Assembly: GCA_050084985.1 (NCBI GenBank)
Contig: JBITNC010000001.1
Coordinates: 17,980,001-18,044,000 of the forward strand
DNA length: 64,000 nt
Reading direction: 5' to 3'
Source: Nageia nagi
Lineage: Eukaryota > Plantae > Pinophyta
Positions 21,839-44,144 of this stretch are shown in pieces. The notes beneath the pieces were generated by a model. It was not told where the DNA came from, did no database searches, and saw nothing but the letters and a program-made list of their open reading frames with translations. Made by a program: the position numbers and the translations under genes. The number at the start of each line of letters is the position of its first letter. Position 1 is the first letter of the stretch.

Positions 21839-23022
21839 TGTGATGCCCCCCTTGCATAAATGGAAATAATTATGGTAATCCAATGGATTCCCCTTTTGTA
21901 TTAGATTTCATTATTGTTATGGTGCTTAAAGTTGGGACTTGGGATAGAAGACTTAATGGGTCAATGGACCCCACTGTGAGCCCCAAGTGGGACGTTTCCC
22001 TCCCAAGCATAGATTAGGAGTTTTATTGTACTTGGAGGTCCCAATAATGATTGTGGGAATCCCAAGGTTTATTTAGCATTTAGATGAATGGATGAGCACT
22101 TATGTACATGTGCTAGCCTTGGGGAGACTCCTAGACCCCCATATTGGCCCATGATGACACCTAGCCCCCACACGACTCCTAGACCCACGTTAAGCATGCG
22201 TGGCACTCTAGACCGCCACGTTGGCATTTATGGCACCTGGGCACCCACATTGGACATGCCTGACCCTTAGGCACCCACATTGGGCATTTTGGCCCCCTAG
22301 GAGGCTAACATTGGATTAGAGGAGCTGGTTAATGACTCCTATGTGAGATCCAAATCTAGTAAAGTGTATAAAAAAGCATTGGAGCCTCATAGTTGGATAT
22401 ACTTGATTATTATTACATTTGATATCATCCAAAGGACAAGAAGACTTAGCCCAATGCTAAGCAAACCCCTAGGTGCAACATCTATGAGGATTAGCAGGTT
22501 GAGGGATCTTGTTAGTCTACGACGCTGGTGTAGCACCCTTGCCCATCCAGTGGTATTCCAAGGTTACGCTTCTACCATTCAGTTGGTCACTAGGATCAGA
22601 GGAGGGCTCCTTCGATGGAGAGGATTTGGGTTTTGAGGTAGCAAAATTGGCCCATCCTTCCATCCAGCTTGAGAACATTGTTGTGCCCTAGTTGGCTCCT
22701 TGGAGGCCAACATCCAGCTCTAGGAGCTTAGTATTGTATCATTGTTCATTTCATATCATTATACAACCATTAGGCCATTCAATCTCTAATTTACACTATT
22801 TACTTGTTCATGTTTGCAATGTTGAGTTATCTTTGCATGTATGCGATTGTATGAGCCCTATGTTGGCATTTTGTAGTGTTGTATATTGTTATCTGTCAGT
22901 TTTTGCTAGATGTTGGCATTGATGTGTTATGCATGCATTATCTAGATGCCCTAGACCATACGTTCCGGTTTACTTGTGTGTTTTAAGCATTTTGCACTTG
23001 ATGTTGTATTTGGATCTTTATA
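21839..23022 (+). repeat. 5' LTR of element B (1184 bp)
   Basis: Starts TGTGATGCCCCC; homologous to 29104-30015; contains short CTAGACCC/GCACCCACATTGG repeats. Confidence 0.92.
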
Positions 23023-26000
23023 GTGGTATCAAAGTTGAAGATTTTGTCGCCTGAGGAAATGGAAGCGAAATCTACAACCACAGTGAAGAAGTCAGAATTT
23101 GGAAGGGTAGTTTTCTACCAACTTCAAAAATTTGAAAATAATAAGATCCCTTTGAAGCAAAGGGAGAGGCTCTTATGGTTCCTAGGTGAACAACATGAGG
23201 AGAAGATGTGCAAGAAGAGAGGGCATACGTGGAACCCAGATTTGTGCCTCCGCACAAGACTCTACCAAAGATCGAAATCTTGCTCCAAATCTACTGGGGA
23301 ACTACCAAAGGGTTCCACATAGACATCACCTTCCAGTTGTACCAGGATCTTCTAGGGAATAGAGTGGTGGCATGGCAAAAAACCAAAGTTAGGAAGGAGG
23401 AGGCAACCAGGATCGCAACGTTTAGATTAGGGCCACCAAGAGGAGCTAGGGAGGTGGATACCCCATTGGATCGGAAGAAGAGGGTCGAGCGGAAGTTGTC
23501 ACTTAGATTTGATGCCACTAGTAGTAGACTAGAGGCCGTCACGCAGATGGTATCGACCAAGAAGATGAGCGCTATCATCCGAAAAGGGTAGATCGAGTGG
23601 GGCTATGTTTTCACTTTGGCCAAGAGAGGCCCCACGTTGCATTTTGGGGAGCCCAAAGAGCAGCCGTTGGAGGTCCAACACATCTTGGACTAGTATTCGA
23701 ACATCTTCGAAGATATGACCAAGGGCTTGCCACCATCCAAAGGGTTTAAGCACACAGTTGAGTTGGAACTGGAAACCAAGCCTGGTTTGATCACTCCTTA
23801 CAGGCATCCAAAGATCTACAAGGATGAGATAGAGAAGACAATCAAGAAACTGCTAGATATGGGATTGATACGACCTAGCTCTAGTCCTTTTGCCTCTTTA
23901 GTTGTGCTAGTCAAGAAGAAAGATGGGACTATGAAGATGTGTATTAACTACTGATTGCTCAACAAGAAGACCATCAAAACCACGTATCACATTCCTAGAG
24001 TGGATGAACTCATTGATGAATTGTATGGGGCCAAATACTTTTCGAAAATAGATTTGAGATCCGGATACCATCAAATCAAGATGAAGGAGGACATCCACAA
24101 GACGACATTCAAATGCCATTTTGAGTTTCTAGTAATGCCTTTCATATTGAATAATGCATCAGCCACCTTCCAATCAGCTATGAACCAGGTTTTCAGAGAG
24201 CAACTGAGGAAGTTTGTGTTAGTCTTCTTTCATGACATCCTAGTATACAACAAAACATGGGAAGAACACCTCAATCATCTGGACCACGTTTTGAAGACAT
24301 TGCAGGATCAGAAATTTTATGCCAAACAATCCAAGTGTGACTTTGGTATGATTGAGATTCTATACCTTGGTCACATCATCAACTATGAGGGAGTTAGTGT
24401 GGATGAGCAAAAGATTGTAGCTATCCAGAAGTGGTTGGCACCCACGTCCTTAACATAGCTAAGAAGGTCTTTGGGGCTATGCAACTACTACATGAGGTTC
24501 ATATGTGGTTTCTCCTACTTGGCTGCCCCCCCTAACACAATTGCCAAGAAGGATGCATTCGTTTGGAGTGAGGGTGCTCAAAAGGCCTTTGAGACACTCA
24601 AAAGGGTCATGTGTTCCTGTCCTTGTTTAGCTATACATGATTTCTCAATCCCTTTCACAGTGGAGTGTTATGCATCCAAACTTGGTGTTAGAGTTATACT
24701 CATGCAAAAGGGGCAACCGATTGCATTTGAGAGTAGGAAATTATCTAATGCAAAGCAAAGTTTCAGTGTGTATGATAAGAAGATGTTGGCCATCATGCAT
24801 GCATTGGAGATGTTCAAGCAATACCTAGTTTGTGGTCCATTCATCATAAAAAATGACTACAATAGCTTGAAGTACTTTCTCAGCTAGTTAGATTTGAGTG
24901 AGAAACAACAAAGATGGGTAAGTAAGCTTCAATCCATTGATTTTGAGATCCAATACATCAAGGGAAAGAAGAATATAGTTGTTGATGCATTATCCAAAAA
25001 CCCATCCTTTTACTCTCTTCTGTCACTAATAATTAGAAGAAAACGTTAAAGTTTGAATACACTCATGATGAGTTTGCTCAAGGCATCCTAAGTGGGACGA
25101 TGAAGAACAAGAGGTACATGGTTAAGGACGGATTGATCTTGAAAGGGAATAGGATATTCCTAAGTCCTAAATCTGAGGTGAAGAAGAAAATGCTCCATGC
25201 CTTGCATAACACCCCTTTTGCAGGACATCTAGGCATAACCAAGACCTACAAGGTAGTGAGAGAGAGGTTCAAATGGAAGGGGCTGAAGCAAGACGTTTTG
25301 AGGCACATCCAGGAGTATGTGCAATGTTAGGAAAACAAGGGGGAGCATGTGAAACCAACAGGGTTGCTCCAACCATTATCTATTCCTCAGCAGAAATGGT
25401 AAGACATCTCCATGGACTTCATCACTGGTCTTTCGAAGGCACAAGGCAGAGATAACATCTTTGTGGTGGTTGATAGGCTCGCCAAATTTGCCCATTTCTT
25501 TGCCATCACTATCACATATACAGCAACACAATTGGCCGACCTATCCTTCAAGGAGATTTTCATATTGCATGGGTTGCCTAAGAGGATTGTGAGTGATAGT
25601 GACAACAAACTCATGAGCTTGTTTTGACAAGAATTGTACTGGTTAAGTGGCACCAACCTCACCCCAAGCACTAGCTACCATCCACAAACAGACGGGTAGA
25701 TAGAAATCGTCAACAAGTGGATGGAAGGGTACTTGAGACACTATGTGATAGGGCAACAACATACGTGGGCCAAGTGGCTCCATGTTGGGGAGTATTGTTA
25801 TAACTCCACCTATCATGTGTTGATCAAAATGTCTCCCTTCAAAGCTTTGTATGGTTATGATCCTCCTAACTTTACAGACTTGATTTTTGATGAAGGTAGG
25901 TCTCAAAAGCTAAAGATTTCTTGCAGGAATACCAGGACATCATGAGAGCATTGAAGGAGAACCTGCAGATGGCCCAAAATCGATGAAAAAGGTACTATGA

Positions 26001-26180
26001 TTATGTTAGGTCCCTATACATTATTATTGTTAGGTCGGCTATGGTTATTATTATTTCCTTACATTATTATTGTATGTCGGCTAGTGTCCTTTCATTGTAG
26101 TGGCACCCCTTGGACTCCTATATATACTAAGGAGGTATTATCATTTGAAGATGTCTATTGTTGTGTAATTGATGTGATGT

Positions 26181-26246
26181 AAAGGAGGTTGCCCCCTCGA
26201 AGTGGCTTATTACAAAGGAGGTTGCCCCCTCGAAGTGGCTTATTAC
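26181..26246 (+). repeat. Perfect 33-bp tandem repeat inside the element C LTR (also present in the 3' LTR)
   Basis: AAAGGAGGTTGCCCCCTCGAAGTGGCTTATTAC x2. Confidence 0.95.
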
Positions 26247-27361
26247 AGATTTTATCTCTTATTCAATGCGTTGAGCTCTCTCTTTGGTGATTTTATGCTA
26301 TTTTGGGAACTTTGTTCATAACATTTGGTACCAGAGCAGACGATTCTAGGGTTTCACAGCTCAAAACTAGTCATCGTGGCATTTTCGCTACCAATTGTTT
26401 TTCGGGAGGATTCAGATTTTGAAATTTATTGGGTTTTTTGAAGACATAACGAAGAAGTTTCGGTTAAAATTTCAGCTCCTAATTCGCTATATTTTTTAAG
26501 TTACACTCAGGGGAAGTTAAGGTTTGTGACTAGTCGCAAAAGCAGGTCTGAAACAGGTGTTCTAGCTAAAAAGGGTATATCTGAAGTTTTACAGCTCCAA
26601 AATAGGTGAAACCTATTGTATTGGTTAGGTTATATACTAAAGTTTATTTGTTACAATTTTCAAGGTCTGAGAATAAACAGGTGACACAAGGCACTTCATA
26701 CAAGTTCGCTCTTCAAAAAAATCCAAAAATCAGCACATTTTGGGAAAATTGCAGTCATTTCCTCTTGGACTATCAGAATTTGACGAAATATGTGGCATTG
26801 AAAAGAAGACATCTGAGGCTACCATAGGTATAAATTTAAGACTCTAAAGGGCCAAAATTTCATATTTACATCAGTTGGAAGGTTGGATAATAGAACAGTC
26901 TCCAAATCACGATTTAAAAAGGTACAATTTATTTATTTATTTCTTTAAATTTGCATATATTTTGATTGGAAGGTCTATTTGGGGTGATTCATAAGCTATT
27001 GGAAAGAAAAGAAAGAGTAGATTCTTTTAGGTATAGATGTGTTCTGGCATCTTTAAACATAGGAGCTGTCGTTACTTTGCCAGCACTGCATCCCGAGGAA
27101 TTGTGGTCTCCTACAACGTACTCGCAGTATATCGCTTAGGCCACTGTTGGATTCTCTCACGTACCTTTGAGTATATAGAGAGGCCATCATGCTCATGCAC
27201 GTACATGGTATATAGAGAGGTCCTTTAGGATTCCCTCACGTACCGCGAGTATATTAGCAAGGGCCCTTTTCGAACGGTTGTGCATTAGACAGCACTAGCA
27301 CAGAATTGAGCTCCCACGTACCTGGCGTATATAGGGAGACCCCCTAGAATACTTAGTCAAA

Positions 27362-28287
27362 ATGCCACCGAAAAAAATTGCTACACCAACTAGACCTCTA
27401 GAGGGTTCATCCATGACTACGGCAAAAAGTGAAGACATATTCTTTCGAATATCCCAAGTGGAAGAATTGGTTAAAGAGTGTGTAAAAAAGGGTGATATGG
27501 AGGAATTAAAAAGGATTTGACAAAAGAGTTGGCAACTAAAATGGATCAATATATGGAAAAGATTTTTCAACTCATACAAAACCCAGAGGTAAATATTCCT
27601 AAAGATGTTGATATGGCCCAGGGTTATCAGGTAAATAATGATATTATTCAAGGAGATAAACCCTTCATTAATAAGCCTAATTCAGGAGGATATGCTTCTA
27701 CTGATGGAAGTAATCAAGCATGGTTCTCAAGGGGAATCCAAATCCCCAAGATCGACATGAGGAAGTTTGATGGAAGGGACCCCATCACTTGGATATTTCA
27801 AATGGAGCACTTTTTTGATCTACACCAAGTACCAACATCACAAAAAGTAACTATTGCATCCTTGTATCTAGAGCCTGAGCAGGTGGTATGGTACCAATGG
27901 CTTTGTGAACGTAAAAAGGGTTCTATTATATCTTGGTCCATTTTTACAGAGGAACTGATAGCCTACCATGAGGATGTTAAGAATAATTCCTTCTTTACTC
28001 AATTGATAAATCTAAGGCAAGAAGGTTCAGTGATGGAGCACATTCAACAATTTCAAAAGTTGAGTCTTAGAGTGAAGGATATACCAGATGATAGATTTTT
28101 GGATCTCTTTATGGGAATCTTAAAGGATAAAATTCAACATGAGGTGCATCTATTTGAACCAACATCCTTAGAGATGGCTTTTAGGATGGCAAGGAAGGTT
28201 GAAAGTAAAAATATGGCAATGGCTGAATATTCCACATGGGAAGATGAAAAATTTCTACAGAAGCATCCAGAACTACTAAAATGTTGA
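27362..28287 (+). CDS. Retrotransposon Gag (retrotrans_gag domain) fused to the last residues of an integrase chromodomain; 1-nt frameshift near 27510
   Basis: ATG 27362 (MPPKKIAT...) reads to the AAAAAGG run; ORF 27517-28287 contains PKIDMRKFDGRDPITWIFQMEHFF, LINLRQEGSVMEHIQQFQKL and ends EYSTWEDEKFLQKHPELLKC. Confidence 0.8.
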
Positions 28288-29103
28288 GGACAACATTTTT
28301 TTGAAGGAGAGGGGCATGTTAGGTCCCTATACATTATTATTGTTAGGTCGGCTATGGTTATTATTATTTCCTTACATTATTATTGTATGTCGGCTAGTGT
28401 CCTTTCATTGTAGTGGCACCCCTTGGACTCCTATATATACTAAGGAGGTATTATCATTTGAAGATGTCTATTGTTGTGTAATTGATGTGATGTAAAGGAG
28501 GTTGCCCCCTCGAAGTGGCTTATTACAAAGGAGGTTGCCCCCTCGAAGTGGCTTATTACAGATTTTATCTCTTATTCAATGCGTTGAGCTCTCTCTTTGG
28601 TGATTTTATGCTATTTTGGGAACTTTGTTCATAACAGATTAGAACCAAACAAAGAGAACATTTGAGGTAAGAGACATGGTGTACTTGAGGTTGCAGTCAT
28701 TCCGACAATCTTCACTCAAGAAGAGATCAGAGAACTTGTAGCCTAGGTTCTTTGGACCATACAAGATCCTACGCAAGATAGGAGAGGCTACCTATGAGTT
28801 GGAGATGCCCCACGAGAGCAAGATCCACAACACCTTCCACATCTCACTCCTGAAGAAGGCCATGGGACAGCAGAACGTTTCTTCCACTACTCTACCCTCA
28901 CTTGATGATGAGGGATGGCTGGTTTTGGTTCCTGAAAGAGTGCTGGAGACTAGGATCAAGAAATTAAGGTCCAAATAGTTTTAGGAATACATGATCAAAT
29001 GGAGGGATTTGTTGGATGAGGACTCCGCATGGGAAAGAGCAAAGATACTTGCACATCCTGCATTGAATTGCTTGAGGGCAAGCAATCTTGAGAGGGGAGG
29101 CTT

Positions 29104-30015
29104 TGTGACGTCCCCCTTGCATAAATAAAAATAATTATGAAATCTAATGGATTCCCCTTTTGTATTATATTTCATTATTGTTATTGTGCTTAAAGTTAGG
29201 ACTTGGGATACAAGACTTAATAGGTCAATGGACTCCACTGTGAGCCCCAAGTGGGACGTCTCCCTCCCAAGCATAAATTAGAAGTTTTATTGTACTTGGA
29301 AATCCCGATCATGATTGTGGGAATCCCAAGGTCTATTTAGCACTTAGGTGGATGGATGAGCACTTATTTACATGCACCAACCTTGGGAAGACTACTAGAC
29401 CCCCACGTTGGCATTTATCATCCAAAAGATAAGAAAACTTAGCGCAACGCTAAGCAAACCCTTAGGTGCAACATCTAGGAGGATTAGCAAGCTGAGGGAT
29501 CTTGATAGTCTACAACACTGGTGTAGCACCCTTTTCCATCCGATAGTATTCCGAGGTTGCGCTTCTACCATTTAGTTAGTCACCAGGATCATAGAAGGGC
29601 TCCTTTGATGGAGAGGATTCGAGTTCTGAGGGAGCTAGACTATCCCATTCATCCATCCAATTTGAGAACATTGGTGTGCCCTAGTTGGCTCCTTGGAGGC
29701 CGACATCTAGCTCTGGGACCTTGGTATTATATCATTGTTCATTTCATATCATTATACAACCATTGGGCCATTCGATCTCCAATTTACATTGTGCACTTGC
29801 TCATGTTTGCAATGTTGAGTTATCTTTGCATGTATACGATTGTGTGATCCATACGTTGGCATTTTGTAGTGTTGTATATTGCTAACTACTAGTTTGGGCT
29901 AGACATTGGCATTGTGGTGTTGTGTATGCATTATTTGAATGCCCTAGACCATACGTTAGGGTTTACTTGTGTGTTTTAAGCATTTTGCACTTGATATTGT
30001 ATTCAAATCTTTACA
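29104..30015 (+). repeat. 3' LTR of element B (912 bp)
   Basis: Starts TGTGACGTCCCCC and ends CTTTACA. Confidence 0.92.
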
Positions 30016-33560: not shown

Positions 33561-34106
33561 ATTCTTCCTGAAGCAACTGAAACAAAGTTTCTATAATCTG
33601 ACTCTGCCTCTATTCCCACCGTTGGTTTGACTCCGATTGTAAAGATTCCCATTGCCGCTTCTACTGTTATCTCCTTAGGACTAAGAAACACCACTTCAAA
33701 AGGAGATTAGAGGTCATTTCCTCCCTCCATTCCAATCCCATATCAGTTTGGCACTCCTTCCTTCCTAAGAAACACATCATGAGTTCCATCTCTCTTCATA
33801 CTTGGAAGGACTACGCCTCTAGCCTTTACACTATCATCGGACATTCCCCTCCCACTGCTGACCTCTTACTTTTGACTTCTGCTCGGCCCCCCTCATCCAT
33901 TCCACCATTTTAGCGACTTAATTCTGGAAAAACTCCCGAAATTGAAAAACCTCCAAGGCGAGTTCCTCAAGCATGCTAAAGCCACCCTTATCTCTCGAGG
34001 CTCTTCAACAATGTTATCTGCTCAAGTTTTCCATCTTCTTGGACCTCCAACATCATCCACCCTATCTTCAAATCCGACGATCCCAGCAAACCAAGTAATT
34101 ACTGCA

Positions 34107-35015
34107 TGTAATGTCCCCATTTTTGGCATCCCTTTCATGTAATGTACTTTAATGTTTGACTTGATCAACATGGAGTGGGACGTCCCCCTTGTGGGAATAA
34201 ATAGGTATGTTTTTATTATAACTAGGTGTATTTTTTATAAATAATAATGAGGCATCATAATGTCTTTGTTTAGTGTTGTGTTTGAGATCTCAAGGAGAAA
34301 TTAAAAGATCCTAGAAGGGACACCCAACTATAAAGAGGAGCATCCCACGTTGAGGGATGCTTTTGGATTTCATTTCTGGACTTCAATTGGAGAGAGCAGT
34401 TGAATCAGTTGTTTTACCTTTCCTATGGACAAAATCCTACAGAAGCAAGATCTAGAGGATGAAAACCCTCTTAGATATGAGATCTTAACTTAAAAACCAA
34501 AACCCTTGAGATCTCCATTGGTGGATCCATCCTTGGTTCACATTTGAGCTTACTAGTATTTTCTACATTCAGGTCTGAGTTTTCTAAGGCCCATAGTTAG
34601 ACGTGCATCCTTGCGAGAGTCAAATTGTCTTGAGGCATTCCAGCCTTGCCCATACTCAGACATCCACCAGTTTGAAGGTTTGGAAGCAGTTTGTGAGCAT
34701 TCAACGCTAGGATTTGTGCCCCACAAGCCCAACGTTCAGCCTTGAAGACAGTTTGGTGCATTTCACTTCAGATCTGTAATTGGAGGCATTTTGATGGTAT
34801 TTCTTGCCTTGATTTGGGCTGTACTAAATTTTCTCATTAAATAAAGCTTGGTGTTGTGTTGGATCTGCAAATTTTGTGTCCAAAATACCTAAATTTGATT
34901 TGGTTTGCTTAGATCTGTATTTTTCTTTCAGTATTATTTCAGAATCCGCAATTTAGGCTTGAATTTTAGTAGATCTGCATGCCCAGGGTTTGTATTTCAG
35001 TTTGGGCACATTACA
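34107..35015 (+). repeat. 5' LTR of element D (909 bp)
   Basis: Homologous to 39128-39989 with scattered substitutions and indels. Confidence 0.93.
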
Positions 35016-36365
35016 GTGGTATTAAAGCATAGATCTTGCCAGCCTGTGAATCATGGATTATGATGAAGAATCAAATCATTCGAAGATAGGATTGATCGAA
35101 TGAACAATCTAATGAAACAATTGATCCAGGGCATACCTGTGCAATCCCATGTGGCTACATCATCTCAGCCAGCTTAGGGTGAGAGATTGACAATACCTAC
35201 CAAATATGGGCCTACACACCTAACAATTCATGTTGCTACACAAGATCAGGGAGGTTAGAACTCAGCTGCTCATTCTTTACCCATGTTTCTACGGAGATTG
35301 TTGTTAGGAAAGCCAAGCACACAGATCTACAATTAATGGTGACCATCAGCCACAAGAAGAGGTAGAACAAAACAGAAATTTTGACAAGGGTTGCTCTTTA
35401 TATGGAGCTGACATCAAAAAATTGAGTCTGATCCAGAGCTTCAAGTCCCAGTCGATCAGCTCGTTGAAGGTCATGCTAGAATCGAGAGAACAATATCTCA
35501 TTTAGAAGATACAAGTGCAAAAGAGGATGAGGAACAAAATGACAAGACAGCCATGCACACTGAAGATTTTAATGATCTGCAATTGCATAAAACTACAGGC
35601 ACAAACATATCTTCTTTCTCTTTTGAGGAAACTAATGGTTTGAGATTTGAAGATGTTGAGGATGTAAATACTGCTACCTTGAGTATCTACACCCAAAATG
35701 TTGAATTGGTTGAATCTAAAATTAAAAATGATGCAGTGGATATAGTGCCTAATACCAATGGTAAAAATGTTGCATTTGATACATTGTCTGATCCTGCAGT
35801 CATTGCCAAATCTGAGATCAGAGATGGCCTTACAGTTGTGCCCCAATCTGACCCTAGTTCATTATTTACATCTGAATCTGCAAATCATGCATCTCCTTTT
35901 GTTGAATGTTGTTTTGAAACCAAATCTGTTCACGACATCAATGTAAGTAACGGTGTTTCTCAAACACTGTTATCAGAAACTGGTGCAACATTTCAGAATG
36001 TCGATAGAGTTCTGTTGTTTTGCCTGTTTCAGGGTCAGTTTCAGTGAATTTTTCTTCTGATACCCAGAATGCTGAAATAAATTTTAAAGAGGGAGAGAAT
36101 TCCATGGAAAGAACTCCAGCAGTTTTTGATATTTCTCACTAATCTTACCGTAGTGATACTATAATACCAGAACCTCCCTTAAGTGTCTGAAACAGTACAA
36201 ATTATTACTGTTAATGATTTTAGTGAATCTGTTTAAATTCAAAAACTTAGTGCAAGTGGGGTTAATAAAACAGATGATGCTGTTAATTTAGTGGATGTGA
36301 ATGGCATCGATTTGAATAGCAGAATATCTACATTTGAGTCCTTGATATCATAAGATTCTGAATGT

Positions 36366-36512
36366 TCCTTCCCATCTATTCAAGAATTAGCAGAGGCTGG
36401 ATTGATTTCTTGCAAGTTACCAAATCATTTTCTGTTCTCACCTGATAGTCCACTTGCGAAACAAGACGTAATCAGTTGGAAGGTCGCTTTAGGAAAAAAA
36501 CAATTACCAGTG
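36366..36512 (+). pseudogene. Captured fragment of an S-layer-homology (SLH) domain plastid protein (At5g23890/At5g52410-like)
   Basis: Manual translation SFPSIQELAEAGLISCKLPNHFLFSPDSPLAKQDVISWKVALGKKQLP resembles the recalled FPxIQGLAEAGLISSKLS..FSPESPLSRQDLVSWKMALEKRQLP. Confidence 0.7.
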
Positions 36513-36679
36513 GATTCCAATGCTATTTCATTGAAGCCAGAATACACTACAGTAGAGAAAGTGAATTTTTTATCAGCCTAAGAGGAAATATCTTGAAGAA
36601 AAATCAAGAGGAAAATACATGTGATTGTTCAGTTCCATATCTGCTTTGCTTGTTGGCCCCTCGGCCAATTGGTTCAAGA

Positions 36680-37497
36680 GTGCAAAACAGGTGATTGGCT
36701 TGCATAGTGGTGCATTACTAGGTGTTTTGTATAGGATGCCTAGGCGGGTAACCCCAGGATCTACAACTGTTACTTCAGTTATGCAGTCATCTTCTTTATC
36801 AAGCCTTGCTCCAAATGGAAGTGGTATGCTTTCATCCTTTGGAGCTGTGGAAGATGGAACATTTGCATCTCTGAGATTTCCAGTTGGTGAAGGTCCAGTC
36901 AATTTCTGGCTTTATAGTCAGGAAACATTCCAACCAGTAAGTGGATTCCTTCCTCAGCCGGAATGGACTGCAGGGATGAAACAGTGGAGTACTGTGCTTT
37001 TGCATATCAACAGTATATAGTAATTGCTTCACTTCGACCTCAATTTCAGTTAGTTGGAGATGTAGCTATTGTTGCTTATACAGGAGGTGTATGGCATTGC
37101 CAACAACTGTTTGTAGCTACGCCTACTACAATTGAATGTGTCTCTGTGGATTCTGATGTAAGGAAGTAGAAGGAAGAAACGAGAGGTAATGAAGTAGCTA
37201 TTGCTGGAGGTAGTGTCTGTGTGGCTGTTAGTCGCTTTACCCCAGAGCAGAGACATCCTGTTGGGCCTCTTCTTGTTGGTGGTGTTAGGGATGGAGTCCT
37301 CTAGCTTGTTGACAAATATATGAATGCTCATGTTATCAGTCTTACCTATGCTGGCATTTGTTGTCACTGTCTTGCTGCATATGGAGATGCTGCTGAGTGC
37401 TAGACTTGGTGGAGAGCATTATGATGATCTGGCACAGTTTATGATTGGTATGGGTTATGCAACTGAAGCCCTTCATTTTCCAGGAATCGCTAAAAGG
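36680..37497 (+). pseudogene. TWD40-2: Captured fragment of TPLATE/TSET complex WD40 subunit (At5g24710-like)
   Basis: KQVIGLHSGALLGVLYR; FLPQPEWTA|DETVEYCAFAYQQYIVIASLRPQF..GDVAI..TGGVWH.QQLFVATPTTIECV; EQRHPVGPLLVGGVRDGVL; HYDDLAQFMIGMGYATEALHFPGIAKR; frameshifted and internally deleted. Confidence 0.85.
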
Positions 37498-37499
37498 AA

Positions 37500-38040
37500 A
37501 CACTACATGCAAGTTAATTTGGATGAAGCACTTGGTTCATTGTTGCCCTCAAATCAAAAGAATGATGAGATATGTTCCATAACATTTAGCGTTCTTCACC
37601 TTTGCCATCAGATCTTAGAAGCAAATACAATTTCAGCAGAACATCTGACTTTGCAACAGCAGGTTCATTTAGATTCGAATTTAGACTACCCATGGCTATT
37701 TCTGCTTAGACATTTATCTGATCCCATAAAGACTACTTTTGCTTCTCCTATACTGACCCACAGTAATAGCAGCTGTTACAAAACTGTACTGACAACTGAA
37801 AATCAGATCATGCATTCAGCAGTGGCAGGGTTACAGGAATTGGCTTTATTTCTAGGATGTCTTTCACCCCTTTCGGAAGACCAATACAGAAATGTTTTAC
37901 CGCTCTTAGTTTCTATTCTGTTAAAAGAGCATGATAAAGTTCCTTTATGGGAGCGTGTGTTGGAGGCACTTGGCTTGATTGGCACATCACTGGAGAAGTT
38001 CAATGATACTAGAATTTTATGTTTCCTGAAGGAAGTAATA
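37500..38040 (+). pseudogene. MMS19: Captured fragment of MMS19/MET18 (cytosolic Fe-S cluster assembly targeting factor)
   Basis: SAVAGLQELALFLGCLSPLSEDQYRNVLPLLVSILLKEHDKVPLWERVLEALGLIGTSLEKFND resembles the recalled plant MMS19 GVKGLQILATF.G..P.S...FENIL..L.SII......LW.LALKAL..IGSFI.R. Confidence 0.65.
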
Positions 38041-38485
38041 TCAGCACTTAAATCAGGCAGTGCTGATTCAAGTTGCTTGGAAACATGTGTTCCTGCAAGT
38101 CTTGCACAAAGCAAAGTGGAAGATTCCTGTTCACCCAGATCAGAAATGTGTCAAAATTCTGGAAAAATAATGCTCCCTAGTCATGCAGCCGTTGAAACTG
38201 TCATTGTAGTTGAAAGAACATCTAATCCTCAATCATCAAATTCAGTCACAGTAATTTCTGAATCTAAAAATACAAGTTCACAGGTCCAGAATTTTAGGCG
38301 TTGCAACTGATCTGTTAAAAGATATTGTATATGGTGATTTGACTATGTCAATTATCAGCCTTGGAGTTGTCTCCTTTCCAGCTGGGGAGGTTGCAAAAAC
38401 AGTGACTGTTCCTGATTTAGTGATTTTCAACAACATGTTGGATCTTAATCACTACCACCAAGAGAAGTTCATAGAAACAGTTGGA

Positions 38486-38775
38486 CAGCAAATGGTACTG
38501 TTCTCAATGGTTGAGCTTGCTCATAAAAGGATACATGAGGCTACTGCTCTTAAAAAGATAGATATTGGAACTGCAAGGTGGCCGAGTATTGCTGTGACTA
38601 AGGGTGCTTCTGATATGGTGTTAACTGATGATAATTTTGCCTCCATTGTTATTGCAGTTGCAAAAGAGAGGGCCATATACAATAATACTAAACAGTTCAC
38701 TGCTATATGATTTATTCAAACATTGAAGTAGTGTGTATATTTGTAGAGGCAATCCTTGGAATGCGAGACTTGTCA
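38486..38775 (+). pseudogene. ECA3: Captured fragment of P2A-type Ca2+/Mn2+-ATPase (ECA3-like)
   Basis: QQMVLFSMVELAHKR..ALKKIDIG..AVTKGASDMVLTDDNFASIVIAVAKERAIYNNTKQF then YMIYSNIEVVCIFVEAILGM. RAIYNNTKQF and VVCIFV are diagnostic of ECA3 rather than ECA1. Confidence 0.85.
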
Positions 38776-39127
38776 ACAGAAACATTTTCAGAAGATTATC
38801 AAGGTGAAAAACGACTATGGCAGAGGAAATGAAGGTTTTCTGATTCTGATTTGAAGACAGCAATGGGATTCCAAAGAAATGTCATTGCTGCATCATGTAA
38901 AACAGGTTTACATGCAGCATGGCACAAGTGTCTAAAGTATGAACGGCAGACCTCTGCATTGGCTGTGCCCAACTTGTCAACCTCAGCTAATCAAAACAGT
39001 GTTATCACAAAATACTTGGTGAGATGGAAGGGTTTGCCAGCAGAAGATGCCACTTGGGAAGGACCTGAAATCCTTGCACATCATACTTTGAATTGCTTGA
39101 GAACAAGCAATTCGGGAGGGGCAGACT

Positions 39128-39989
39128 TGTAATGTCCCCATTTTTGGCATCCCTTTCATGTAATGTACTTAAATGTTTGACTTGGTCAACATGGAGTGGG
39201 GCATCCCCCTTGTGGGAATAGATAGGTGTGTTTTTATTATAAATAGGTGTGTTTTTTATAAATAATAATGAAGCATCATAATGTCTTGTTTTCAGTGCCA
39301 TGTTTGAGATCTCAAGGAGAAATTAGAAGATCCTAAAAGGGACACCCAGCTATAAAGAGGAGCGTCCCACTTTGAGGGATGCTTTTGGACTTCAATTGGA
39401 GAAAGCAGCTGGATCAGTTGTTTTCCCTTTCCTGTGGATGATACCCTACAAAAGCAAGATCTAGAGGACAAAAACTCTTGAGATCTCCATTGATGGATCC
39501 ATCCTGGGTTCACATTTGAGCTTACTAGTATTTTCTGCATTCTGATCTGAGTTTTCTAAGGCCCATAGTCAAACGTCCATCCTTGGGAGAATCAGATTAC
39601 AGTCTTGAGGCATTCCAACCCTGCCCATACTCAGACACCCACCAGTTTAAAGGTTTGGAAGCAATTTGTGAGCATTCAACACCAGGATTTGTGCCCTAGA
39701 AGCCCAACAACCAGCCTTGAAGACGGTTTGGTGCATTTCACATCAGATCTGTAATTTGCAGCATTTTGATAGTATTTCTGCTTTGATTTGCGCTGTACTA
39801 AATTTTCTGAATAAATAAAGCTTGGTGTTGTGTTGGATCTGCAAATTTTGTGTGCAAAATACCTAGATCTGATTTGGTTTGCTTAGATCTGTATTTTTCT
39901 TTCAATATTATTTCAGATCTGCAATTTAAGGCTTGAGTTTTAGTAGATATACATGCGTAGGGTTTGTATTTCAGTTTAGGCACATTACA
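39128..39989 (+). repeat. 3' LTR of element D (862 bp)
   Basis: Homologous to 34107-35015. Confidence 0.93.
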
Positions 39990-42900
39990 CCGCACCATCA
40001 TGATTGGTCACATGTTGGCCAAGTTATATGTCACAATCATTGAGGAGTACATTACACAAATGGCCAATGTCAGAGGGTTCCGAGCAAGAGGGCAGGCAGG
40101 CTGTCATAGAGACCAAAACACCACCAACCATATTTTTACTCTCAAAGCGATCCTTGAGGAGGCTAGATTCCGGAAGTCACAAATCTTTTGTTGTTTTGTG
40201 GACTTCGGGAAGGCCTTTAACTACATTCCTCAACAAAGGCTCGTGTATCGACTTCGATGATTGGGAGTGTCGGAGATGGGACTCTTAGCCATATTGACTT
40301 TGTATGAGACTCTTTCAGGTTGGGTTCGTACCTCTACGGGTGAAGTAGGGTTGCCCTTTCTCCCTGATTTTATTTGATCTTTACATTGATGCGCTGAAGT
40401 CCTTTATCAAAGAGACCACAGATCCCGAGTTAGGTTTCCTTCTCTATGACAGCCACTGCCCATCCTAATTTTTGTTGATGATATTGTGCTACTTTCCCAG
40501 TCAATGGAGGGAATATAGGGCTTGACAAACGCTTTGGATGCTTTCAATGCTAGACAGGAGCTTGTGGTGAACCTTAGCAAGACTAGGGTAGCAACTTTAA
40601 TGTATCGAAGGCCACACTAGACCAGATCCAAATTACCTTCTACAGTAATACCATTGAGACCACCTCCTTTTATACATATTTGGGGGTGCTCTTTTTGGGC
40701 CCCAGGTTCTCCATGAGGACAACCCCTCCCAGGGTCTGTCAAGGTTATGTGGCAGTATCCACCTCAGAGAGACAATGCATCCAACTACACTTTCAAGACA
40801 TCCGGTCCAAGTTAGAGCTATTCCAGACTTTGGTCATACCCACAGTGCTATATGGGATTGAGGTTTGGGGTTCTTGCTTGGGAGAAGTAGATTGGACCAC
40901 GATAGAGAGAATTTTGTTCACCTTTCTATCCCATTTTATTTGGAGTAAGATGGCAGTCCCACACCTTATCATACTTGCGGAGTTCAATTGTCAGCCTCTT
41001 TAGATCTGGGCCATTGCTTCCATAGTCCTCTTCCTCTATCGCCTTCAAACTCTATCAGATTGAAGAGGCAATATAGCTAGATTTCCTATGAGAGCTTTGG
41101 CTTTCTCGATTGATCTAGCTACATAGGGTTATCATTGATGTTGGTTTGCTGAGGTTATAGAGATGCTCCAGAGATTTGGTTTCTCCAAATAGATTACCTT
41201 TACTGTTAAAGGACTCACACAAAACCTCAATGAATTATGTTTGTGATTTGAGAGACGATCTGCAGGGCCTTCATCCAAACCACTTGGGTTTTTCCTCTTC
41301 ACTAGTTGACACCCAAGTTCGATTGTTATGCATAACATTATCTCCAGATCGACAAAGGTTTGATCCCTCCACCTGGCAACATCATTCTACATCTCCCGCT
41401 TTGATTGAGGATGTCCCTTGGACAATTTAGAGTTTTCTCTCACCATCTAAGGATTGAGACAAACCACCACATATCCCAAGATCTTTGAGTCTATTGTCTT
41501 TGTTCTTTGGAGCTTGATTCCGAAGACCATTTTGTATTTCGATGCTCGATCTACTATGAGATCTGCAATGGATACCACTATCTTCCGAGATTCACACAAC
41601 TCTTTAGCTATGCTACGTTCCTCCAATACCCAGATCAGCATTGCTTAGCTCTTTATTTTTGAGAGAAATTCCTTCTACAAAGACGCCTTCTATCTTGCGT
41701 CCAACAACATATTGAGGATCGACGTATTACATCATTTTTTCGAGCCTCTTCTCCTGAGGGGGCTTATAGGAGACGATGAGATGATCATCCACACCCCTTA
41801 AATAGTACCAAGAGGTGTATTCAGGGCGCTCAAGTTTCGTTGAGGACCTGGAAAATTACATGCTTCTTCTTTTCTAGCAGCAGTACCTTGGACTTACCCC
41901 CCCGAGTCCAGTGTGATCACTCCCCGAGGCAAAGAGCATGGCCATATTCTCCCCTCGAAGAGGTCCATGACGACCTCCCTTTGGATAATTCTGATTTTGT
42001 TCCTCCACCTCTTTAGGGTTTGGATCTTTTGTACGGTTGTATTTGCTTATGCTCTCTTTTATGCTTTATTTAGGTGATGCCTAGTAGGGGCTTTGTTGGT
42101 TTCCTACACATGTTTGTACTTACTAGTCCCATTGACCACTTTTGGTCACCCAAGGACATTAATATACTTTCCTTCTTTTCTTTCTTGATAACCACACGAC
42201 TGAGAATATTAAGCATAACATTGATTACTCAAACTCTGTTGTAGTTGTCATGCAAAGTCAAGAGTCCTTTCTTTGAGATGGAAATTAAAATAGCTGCATT
42301 AACCAGGAATGCTACCAAATTTGAAGGACTGTTGACTATTGTTGATAACCTCAATAAAAGCTTCTGCAACAGCACTTCCTCAAGTGGTAAGGCTCAAGAT
42401 TCAAAACGAGGCAGCACATTTGCCATCTCTAAAAGACAAACACTTGCAATGGAATCTATTTCTACCCAAAGTCTAATCATGTCAACTCTGAATTATATGA
42501 CATTATCTGCTTTGGGAAACGATTAAGATGTTTACTTAATAAAGATTCTGTCATTTTTATTAATGTCTGAACCATCATAGCTATAGTTTTTTGTCAAATT
42601 TGACACTGATTACAAGGATGGGCTTTCTGTAAGAGGTGCAAGATACATCATGCATTTAATATAAGACACTACTAATGGCTCTAAACATCAAACATAAGCA
42701 CTTTTAATTATCTACTCACACATATCAACTTCATTAGGACAAAAAACATGGATCAGATTCCAACTGTGCCCTGTATAGTTTAAAAAAATAATGGAAACAC
42801 TAAAATAGCAGAACTTATCCAGGCATCATACATGCTAAATAATTCACAATCAGAGAAAGCAGATAAAAAAAGCACAATAAAAGAAACTTGCATGTTAACT

Positions 42901-42996: not shown

Positions 42997-44144
42997 TCAT
43001 CGTTTCAATTTTGCTTTCATTCTCTCAACAGCCTTTTTCAATGTGTCTTCATCTTTGGCAAATGTAAATCTTACCATGTTTTTGCCATCATTGGGGTCCA
43101 AGTAGAATACACTGGTTGGTATGGCAACAACACCTACATTTTCAATTAGATGCTTGCAAAAATCAATGTCCCTGTCAAAGCCAAATGGAGTGTGATCAAC
43201 CATTACAAAGTAAGTGCCTGGTGAATCATAGACAATGAAGCCCACGTCTTTCAAACCATCCACTAAAATCTCCTTCTTAGCCCTGTAATCTTTCTCGAGT
43301 TCTTGATAATAAGAGTCTGGAGCCTGCAGAGCAGTCACAGCTGCCCATTGCATAGGGGTTGATGTGGCAAAGGTCAGAAATGAATGTGCTTGCCTCACTC
43401 CCCATGTTAGATGAGGAGGTGCAATTGCCCAACCAATCTTCCAGCCTGTTAAAGAAAATGTTTTGCCCAAGGAGTTCATTGTGACAGTTCTCTCATACAT
43501 TCCTGGAAGTGAAGCCATGGAAATGTGTTCTCCTTCAAAAACCAACTTATCATACACCTCATCAGTAAAGGCCCAGGTATCATTCTCAATGCAGAGTGAA
43601 GCTATAAGATCTAGCTCTTTCCGAGAAAACATCTTTCCAGTGGGTTGTGTGGAGTGTTGATCATAATGGCCCGTGTCTTTTTGGAGAAGGCCTCACGAAG
43701 CTCCTTTTCAGGCACTGCAAAGTCAGGTGGCCTCAATGTTACAGTCTTAATTTTGGCTTCTGACATTGATAAAGTTGCTTCATATGAATCATAGAATGGG
43801 GCAAAAAGGATCACTTCGTCTCCTGGATTGATCAAACCCAACATAGTTGCAGCAATGGCCTCTGTGCATCCAGAAGTAACAGTTACTTCTTTCTCAGGAT
43901 CAATTGTCAAACCGGTATCCTTTTTAAATCTTGCAGCCACTGCAGAATTTAGCTCTGAGACACCATAACCACGTGCATATTGATTTTTGCCTTCTTTTAT
44001 TGCCTGAATAGCAGCCTCCTTGACAAATTCAGGACCATCGAAATTTGGGAAACCTTGACCAAGATTTATAGCTTGATGTTTCACAGCCAGGCTGCTCATT
44101 TGTGTAAAAATTGTGGTCTTAAATTTCTCCAAGCGGTGAGATAC
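42997..44144 (-). CDS. GTK: Exon 2 of PLP-dependent aminotransferase class I/II (glutamine transaminase K / kynurenine aminotransferase-like, At1g77670 family); 1-nt frameshift at about 43643
   Basis: Acceptor TTGTAG|GTATCT at 44145/44144; VSHRLEKFKTTIFTQMS, INLGQGFPNFDGP, NTPHNP(TG), DEVYDKL, SLGKTFSLTGWKIG (PLP lysine), VRFTFAK; stop TGA at 42999-42997. Exon length 1148 nt is one short of a multiple of 3. Confidence 0.93.

Follow-up and report, generated by a model that had tools for sequence, protein, structure and literature searches.

Retroviruses transduce oncogenes through template switching by reverse transcriptase (RT). Pack-MULEs, Pack-CACTA elements and Helitrons capture genes at the DNA level, with the donor introns kept, and they end in terminal inverted repeats (TIRs) or in Helitron termini. 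For the long terminal repeat (LTR) retrotransposons of plants, there are few examples of multi-gene transduction that have been cleanly dissected, and Bs1 of maize is the textbook case. Here we describe an LTR retrotransposon from the conifer Nageia nagi in which gag-pol has probably been replaced by pieces of several cellular mRNAs. The element lies at positions 34107-39989 of a 64,000-nt stretch of genomic DNA (assembly GCA_050084985.1, contig JBITNC010000001.1, positions 17,980,001 to 18,044,000 of the forward strand). We call this whole stretch the window, and all of the coordinates below are positions within it.

Bs1 is described (PMC13317346) as carrying three transduced host segments, including one from a P-type ATPase, which are fused in a hybrid open reading frame (ORF); its cargo is thought to have been gained by RT template switching. 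On that account (which draws on Jin and Bennetzen 1994 and on Elrouby and Bureau 2001 and 2010), Bs1 and our element are both LTR elements without a polymerase of their own. Both contain segments of several unrelated host genes in the sense orientation, none of them at full length, along with a hybrid ORF, and in each of them one of the donors is a P-type ATPase. The two elements differ in the number of donors, with three in Bs1 and four or more here, and also in their identity: our donors are a TWD40-2-like gene, MMS19, a Ca-ATPase, and an unnamed gene. Our element also differs in having a chromovirus backbone with a kept chromodomain tail and in being old (roughly 10% divergence between its LTRs). 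Furthermore, the same account reports expression and translation for Bs1, whereas our element is known here from its sequence.

Surveys of plant genomes show how common capture by LTR elements can be. In maize, 425 LTR elements with gene fragments were identified, none of which had more than one donor under the conditions of that study (PMC2774510). In rice and sorghum, genes captured by LTR elements number in the hundreds (PMC3726574). A 2026 study of gymnosperms (Platycladus orientalis) reported about 400,000 captured fragments per genome; on average, 13.7% of the transposable elements (TEs) that host fragments contain at least two of them, and the captures are described as ancient (PMC13477047). 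The legend of Fig. 7E of that study mentions examples of capture by both Ty3/Gypsy and Ty1/Copia elements. The gymnosperm survey is BLAST-based and leaves the mechanism unsettled, while we consider the apparently spliced origin, block order, junctions, and relative timing for a single element. The best MMS19 match of our element comes from a conifer, as would fit a genome of the kind surveyed. An earlier reading of the window, which was made from the sequence alone, had suggested that the element might represent an undescribed exon-shuffling and gene-silencing system. Because LTR-mediated capture is documented in maize, rice, sorghum, and gymnosperms, this suggestion does not hold: the element is an instance of a known capture process and not a new kind of system. 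Its notable features are the four donors and a chimeric ORF of 328 codons, whose significance is unproven.

The element has features in common with three other kinds of system. In acutely transforming retroviruses, viral coding sequence was also replaced by spliced cellular mRNA via RT recombination, and the resulting viruses are replication-defective and helper-dependent. Unlike these viruses, our element is a plant LTR retrotransposon that carries several unrelated cargos, with no evidence of a selected function. Like Pack-MULE, Pack-CACTA, and Helitron elements, it is a mosaic of multiple host genes within a mobile element and has the potential for chimeric transcripts and for cross-talk via small interfering RNAs (siRNAs). 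However, it has LTRs, a primer binding site (PBS), and a polypurine tract (PPT), and no intron was found at the tested junctions. The sequence-only reading had labelled the element as Pack-type; this fits its look but not its mechanism, as Pack-MULEs and Pack-CACTA elements capture genomic DNA and the cargo here appears to be RNA-derived, so the label is a misnomer. Finally, LARD and TRIM elements are LTR elements too, and they likewise lack coding capacity and depend on mobilisation in trans. LARDs have a non-coding interior that is conserved within the family and TRIMs are tiny, whereas the interior of our element seems to come from host mRNA.

A complete LTR retrotransposon

The only pair of direct repeats that a repeat finder showed for the element consists of 34107-35015 (the 5' LTR, 909 nt) and 39128-39989 (the 3' LTR, 862 nt), both on the + strand. 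The LTR termini are TGTAATG...CATTACA, with the usual TG..CA ends. The PBS, TGGTATTAAAGC, is at 35017-35028 (+ strand) and starts 1 base past the 5' LTR. It agrees at 10 of 12 positions with TGGTATCAGAGC, which we take to be the canonical plant initiator-methionine PBS, and both mismatches are transitions. The PPT, GGGAGGGGCAGA, is at 39114-39125 (+ strand) and ends 2 nt short of the 3' LTR. On either side of the element is a copy of a target-site duplication (TSD), CTGCA on the left (34102-34106) and CCGCA on the right (39990-39994), which are alike at 4 of 5 positions. Thus, 34107-39989 is a complete LTR retrotransposon that was integrated as a unit, and in this respect the sequence-only reading, which listed the paired LTRs, the TSD, the initiator-methionine PBS, and the PPT, was accurate.

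A global alignment of the two LTRs has 858 aligned sites with 83 differences (56 transitions and 27 transversions) and 5 indels, for a p-distance of 0.097 and a Kimura two-parameter (K2P) distance of 0.105. Dating the LTR pair, which the sequence-only reading had proposed, puts the insertion at about 4, 7, or 24 million years (My) ago, given rates of 1.3e-8, 7e-9, or 2.2e-9 substitutions per site per year, respectively. The element is old and inactive: it has been decaying since its insertion via frameshifts, stops, and internal deletions, and it is most probably non-functional today.

An interior with no detectable gag, RT, or RNase H

We searched ten segments of the 4.1-kb interior against Pfam, and the sole match was to the chromodomain (Chromo, PF00385) at 38992-39084 on the + strand (E = 3.6e-7, above the gathering score). 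Neither Pfam searches of these ten segments nor a tblastx comparison of the whole interior to the window identified gag, RT, RNase H, or an integrase core. The only tblastx match between the interior and the rest of the window is to the chromodomain tail (28985-29100) of a larger chromovirus that lies nearby. As a positive control, Pfam finds RVT_1 and RNase H in this neighbouring chromovirus and Retrotrans_gag in an element that is nested within it, so the method is able to see gag, RT, and RNase H even when they are decayed. The sequence-only reading was therefore right that RT, RNase H, and the integrase core are missing and that a chromodomain tail is present. It had also placed a gag-like start at 35053-35390, for which there is no support from Pfam or tblastx.

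The chromodomain is located 30 nt upstream of the PPT and resembles the same region of the neighbouring chromovirus. By homology, then, our element is chromovirus-derived (that is, it belongs with the Ty3/gypsy elements that have an integrase chromodomain), and the chromodomain itself appears to be a remnant of the integrase's C-terminus.

Four blocks that match host transcripts

To identify the origin of the interior, we compared the element to contigs from four public runs, which we will refer to as X1 to X4 (three samples, four studies). X2 and X3 are small assemblies that contain gene-like contigs of 2-4 kb, with depths of 12-76, and TE-like contigs with depths of 2-3. This pattern is probably that of RNA-seq. 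Four blocks of the interior, D1 to D4, each have a deep contig of their own (2.4-3.9 kb, from two other samples) to which they are collinear at 86-88% identity, and these donor contigs run on past the ends of the blocks into sequence that is unlike the element. All four blocks are on the + strand, which is the sense strand of the element and is what the sequence-only reading had stated. Sense orientation is usual for genes that were transduced by retrotransposons (PMC7264820).

Block D1 (35530-36510) corresponds to a piece that had been described as acidic and otherwise unassigned. It is a piece of an unnamed host transcript with an acidic ORF, and it is collinear at ~87% identity with a 3866-nt contig from X3 and a 971-nt contig from X2. 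The alignment covers 35530-36174 and 36182-36362 and extends to ~36510; in the interruption, the element has 7 nt (36175-36181) and the transcript contig has 117 nt. We did not find a protein homolog for D1: a homologous-protein search of the segments was blank (which is uninformative, given the length window of that search), and there was no usable match in the ESM Atlas for its 211-amino-acid ORF. A piece of an SLH-domain protein had been reported here as well. Pfam was blank for this domain, and the weak lead that the ESM Atlas gave for 36354-36578 (0.94, with 166 shared features) was not accepted. D1 is followed by a spacer of ~170 nt (36511-36679, + strand) that has no contig or tblastx assignment.

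Block D2 (36680-37497) aligns to a 2440-nt contig, over 36690-37159 and 37173-37497, and also to proteins. In a tblastn search with a fern homolog (P0043), residues 596-760 matched 36682-37184 and residues 828-948 matched 37149-37497; relative to P0043, D2 has two frameshifts and skips ~67-85 residues internally. Where the contig alignment is interrupted, the element has 13 nt (37160-37172) and the transcript has 268 nt, and the site is flanked by short GAAG-rich repeats. The shortfalls relative to the transcripts at 37159-37173 and at 36174-36182 could mean that the captured RNA had skipped exons or that slippage led to deletions. Residues 5-62 of the 328-amino-acid ORF that begins in D2 match proteins of ~1370-1445 amino acids that contain WD40 and COPA/B-TPR domains. 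We take this architecture to be that of TWD40-2, a subunit of the TPLATE complex. The TWD40-2 assignment in the sequence-only reading can be kept if it is worded as "TWD40-2-like".

D2 is separated by an 8-nt filler, AAACACTA (37498-37505, + strand, from the contig alignment), from block D3 (37506-38055), which is a fragment of MMS19, as had been claimed. A 3232-nt contig aligns to 37506-38009, and the 328-amino-acid ORF is 58% identical to residues 431-608 of the MMS19 protein of Cryptomeria japonica (1169 amino acids, E = 4e-47); the block as a whole corresponds to residues ~419-602. After D3 comes a stretch of ~385 nt (38056-38440, + strand) that separates it from D4. The part of this stretch that is within the ORF (up to 38307) matched nothing in a search of 1.84 billion representative proteins.

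Block D4 (38441-38760) is a fragment of a P-type Ca-ATPase of the SERCA/ECA type (SERCA residues ~680-785). The translation of segment 38255-38707 matches SERCA residues 699-760 with E = 3e-12 (at 38516-38701), as well as Na/K-ATPases from about residue 63 of the query, and a 3664-nt contig aligns to 38535-38744. D4 seems to contain a gap and shifts frame near 38700. Its extension past the frameshift was judged by eye only, and a PDB search with 38692-38829 was blank. This piece had been attributed to ECA3; the family is supported by these matches, but the subtype cannot be asserted. Pfam did not find host domains in any of the interior segments, as the fragments are too short or too decayed.

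The claim that the pieces abut each other is true, or nearly so, only of D2 and D3. Between the blocks are stretches of 8, ~170, ~385, and ~230 nt, and there are ~500 nt between the PBS and D1. This 5' portion (35029-35529, + strand) comprises the leader and sequence without an assignment; it has no match by Pfam or tblastx and is at low depth in all of the runs. The ~230-nt stretch is upstream of the chromodomain (38761-38991, + strand) and has no tblastx match outside of the chromodomain tail. Deep contigs from X2 and X3 cover 38835-39031, with a summed depth of 20-32. This region may be a fifth donor or it may be residual integrase tail of the chromovirus, which would be expressed.

The cargo appears to derive from spliced RNA

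We read intron positions indirectly, from short ORFs on long assembled contigs that were among the HMMER matches. For the TWD40-2-like gene, at least eight genomic ORFs (P0003, P0004, P0005, P0008, P0010, P0011, P0013, and P0014) contain ASRLGREHHDDLAQFMLGMGYATEALHLPGISKR, which corresponds to residues 916-948 of P0043, and another two (P0009 and P0017) run a few residues beyond it. Outside of both ends of this segment, the residues of the ORFs are unrelated to each other. Past ...GISKR, all of the genomic ORFs continue with a codon that begins with T (encoding S, Y, C, F, or L), which is expected for an exon that ends with ...AAAAG and is followed by a GT intron. At the first site, the reading frame of P0003 comes out of the preceding exon and continues across an intron of ~100 nt. 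Together, the ORFs point to two conserved intron positions in the TWD40-2-like gene, at 915/916 and 948/949 (P0043 numbering).

In D2, the two sides of 915/916 are joined directly, without an intron, save for 14 nt that the transcript contig has and the element lacks. We considered whether this deletion might reflect an alternative splice site. It starts with GT, but there is no AG acceptor in register, so we interpret it as an ordinary deletion. Because D2 spans the conserved intron site at 915/916 without an intron, it seems to have come from spliced RNA. Similarly, residues 519-527 of MMS19 are where five genomic ORFs begin or end, which puts an inferred intron at ~523, and D3 is uninterrupted and open there.

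No poly-A was found at the ends of the blocks, which have no run of A or T of at least 7 nt; the sole A7, at 36494, is inside D1. This argues against retrocopies made by long interspersed nuclear elements (LINEs). Overall, where it can be tested (D2 and D3), the cargo appears to derive from processed RNA, and so the absence of donor introns that had been asserted is borne out at intron positions taken from homologs.

Relative age of the captures

The blocks differ from their donor transcripts at 91 of 691 positions (D1, 13.2%), 95 of 795 (D2, 11.9%), 70 of 504 (D3, 13.9%), and 26 of 210 (D4, 12.4%). These four distances are homogeneous (chi-square ~1.1, 3 degrees of freedom). Even though exons of the donors accumulate changes less rapidly than neutral DNA does, the divergence between blocks and donors (11.9-13.9%) exceeds the p-distance between the LTRs (9.7%), and so the captures are older than the insertion. 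We infer that the four captures occurred near each other in time, in one burst or in a single event, and before this insertion. The equal divergence of the blocks does not fit the proposal that the donors were accumulated serially. If the capture predates the insertion, then the mosaic underwent at least one later round of retrotransposition.

Contigs from the public runs also cross the junctions between blocks. One contig from X1 (record 6) bridges D2 and D3 at 37393-37606 with 0 differences, one from X4 (record 26) bridges them at 37438-37683 with 8 differences, and one from X2 (record 13) bridges the end of D3 at 37905-38191 with 3 differences. As these contigs are from independent studies and bridge block boundaries, an assembly chimera is unlikely, which agrees with the view that the mosaic is real. 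In X4, the D2/D3 junction is present in an identical version and also in one that is 3.3% diverged, which suggests that there is more than one copy or allele.

Origin of the mosaic

We consider it likely that this is a non-autonomous LTR element, derived from a chromovirus, in which pieces of cellular mRNAs, after reverse transcription, took the place of gag-pol. This is the core of what the sequence-only reading had proposed, namely a chromovirus-derived mosaic of at least four unrelated host transcripts. Judging from the anatomy of the element and from precedent, the likeliest mechanism is transduction by template switching. During minus-strand cDNA synthesis in the virus-like particle, RT would have left the element's RNA for host mRNAs packaged in the same particle and then returned. 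The switching would have deleted gag-pol but kept the cis-acting parts at both ends: the LTRs, the PBS, the PPT, and the adjoining chromodomain tail. All of the captures would have been made close together in time, and a single particle may have sufficed. An autonomous relative among the chromoviruses would then have supplied proteins in trans to mobilise the finished mosaic, which would have inserted, with a 5-bp target duplication, into an apparent remnant of an old non-LTR RT some 4-24 My ago, depending on the rate.

Several observations weigh against this account. Template switching left no unique signature in the element, and a breakpoint at the end of an exon, as at the end of D2, is not predicted by random template switching. 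The intron positions come from homologs instead of from this genome's own donor genes, and that X2 and X3 are RNA is only a guess. About 1.3 kb of the interior has no assigned origin. The TSD is imperfect (4 of 5 positions), although this is compatible with ~5% decay per copy. Finally, one full copy of the element was seen, and remobilisation rests on the TSD, on the age of the captures, and on the 3.3%-diverged version of the junction in X4.

An alternative is that a chimeric RNA that had already been spliced was captured in one step, with the RNA arising either from a DNA-level mosaic (of the Pack-MULE, CACTA, or Helitron type) or from a read-through locus. Exons that are carried by DNA transposons can be spliced into novel combinations, as documented in PMC1947982, and a single event would fit with the equal divergence of all of the blocks from their donors. 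The 3' end of D2 is also suggestive: it falls no more than 1 nt from the conserved 5' splice site that follows residue 948 (...AAAAG with a T-initial continuation), and just past it are the 8-nt filler and then MMS19. But this is one coincidence among about three testable ends, with a chance probability of ~0.07. D3 starts at MMS19 residue ~419, which is mid-way in an uninterrupted 245-amino-acid homologous genomic ORF (P0002, residues 279-523) with no conserved exon start, and it ends at residue ~602-608, which is off the inferred boundary at ~646. Also, no TIRs or Helitron ends were seen. The position of D2's end may be a coincidence or it may be the trace of splicing of a chimeric precursor, and we view the capture of a pre-spliced chimera as rather unlikely.

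The mosaic could instead be a patchwork that formed after integration, if a chromovirus lost gag-pol and the gap was filled by break repair (with cDNA or filler DNA) or by successive LINE retrocopies. The spacers and short fillers between the blocks do look like repair junctions, the surroundings are rich in TEs, and an intronless aminotransferase copy 3 kb downstream indicates that retrocopies occur locally. Yet the ends of the blocks lack poly-A and secondary target duplications, and the four fragments share the same orientation and the same age. Furthermore, the fragments are older than the insertion, which is hard to square with filling after integration, and X4 has a 3.3%-diverged second D2/D3 junction beside the identical one. 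We therefore think that a patchwork is very unlikely. As for an assembly chimera or chance similarity, nothing specific favours either one, except that none of the run contigs spans the whole element. Independent contigs bridge D2/D3 and the 3' boundary of D3 at 97-100% identity; the LTR pair, PBS, PPT, and TSD are in the correct register; and the protein matches, with E-values of 4e-47 and 3e-12, are too strong to be due to chance. An artifact of this kind is extremely unlikely.

The chimeric 328-codon ORF

The ORF that spans the D2/D3 junction (37324-38310, + strand) has 328 codons. Codons 1-24 are out-of-frame TWD40-2-like sequence, codons 25-58 are TWD40-2-like sequence in frame, codons ~62-249 are from MMS19, and the remaining 79 codons (250-328) have no homolog. 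A PDB sequence search with the 328-amino-acid ORF was blank, and a scan of metagenomes for the 22-mer at the D2/D3 junction gave 0 matches. Short low-depth contigs that are 97-100% identical to the element occur in all four runs, including the two that we only guess to be RNA.

We simulated neutral decay, calibrated on the element's own LTR pair, and found that a 984-nt frame would survive since the insertion with a probability of ~0.02, or perhaps 0.07 if several possible positions are allowed for; the indel rate in the simulation is based on just five events. The blocks outside this ORF have frameshifts and stops. An open ORF of 328 codons is thus mildly unusual, but it is not evidence of selection. 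The TWD40-2::MMS19 ORF might have been kept open by selection and be expressed, as a Bs1-like new gene, or else the fragments might have been spliced together before their capture; that one or the other is the case strikes us as decidedly unlikely. If the spliced-precursor route were true, it would be an undescribed two-stage form of shuffling, from a DNA-level or read-through mosaic to a spliced RNA and then to an LTR element.

Target site and other features

The sequence-only reading placed the element inside a LINE. If the element is removed, the restored target site, translated in the frame that continues downstream, reads ...NYRTIMIG..., which presumably represents the N-Y-R-P-I motif of non-LTR reverse transcriptases. 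Pfam searches of the flanks had no match for a LINE. A PDB search of the flank found only the RT of R2, with E = 0.67 and an alignment through the FVDxxKAFD region, and a PDB search of 40587-41000 found nothing. We regard this as suggestive, with the insertion probably having split an old LINE RT.

About 3 kb downstream of the element, on the - strand at 43000-44000, is a stretch with homology to class I/II aminotransferases (PF00155, E = 2.6e-36). It consists of two overlapping open segments that together encode ~330 amino acids; there is no intron, and the frame seems to shift near 43614-43692. Either a processed pseudogene or an intronless copy of a gene could account for it, and perhaps it runs past 44000.

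On the other side of the element is the larger chromovirus mentioned above (21877-29990). It has LTRs near 21877-22722 and 29141-29715 that are 86-90% identical, along with remnants of RT and RNase H. Nested within it is a 2.6-kb element whose 300-nt LTRs (26003-26302 and 28316-28615) are 100% identical and which has a gag-only ORF (27517-28287, Retrotrans_gag). This nested element is a very recent insertion.

Parts of our element are also found in other contexts. A contig from X2 with a depth of ~19 matches 34499-34700, within the 5' LTR, and is then unlike the element for over 255 nt upstream. Either this piece of the LTR is common to an expressed sequence or the transcript contains a piece of a related TE. 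A 50-nt segment (39089-39138), which runs from the last part of the chromodomain through the PPT and 11 nt into the LTR, has a summed depth of 248-415 in the two DNA runs, as compared to 0-5 elsewhere; related elements that share it are very abundant, and on either side of it they diverge. Near the 5' end, contigs of related elements part from our element after ~35045-35048. A match to an LTR 24-mer from the metagenome scan (L001) was rejected: the contig is bacterial, contains subtilisin-like ORFs, and has only 25 nt in common with the element.

Implications

Three of the donors (MMS19, a TPLATE-complex subunit, and a Ca-ATPase) are essential, and this element could serve to ask whether such cargo takes part in siRNA cross-talk with them. 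With four donors, cargo that appears to be spliced, LTRs that can be dated, and a long hybrid ORF, the element is a good specimen for studying how frequently exon shuffling of the retroviral type occurs in giga-genomes.

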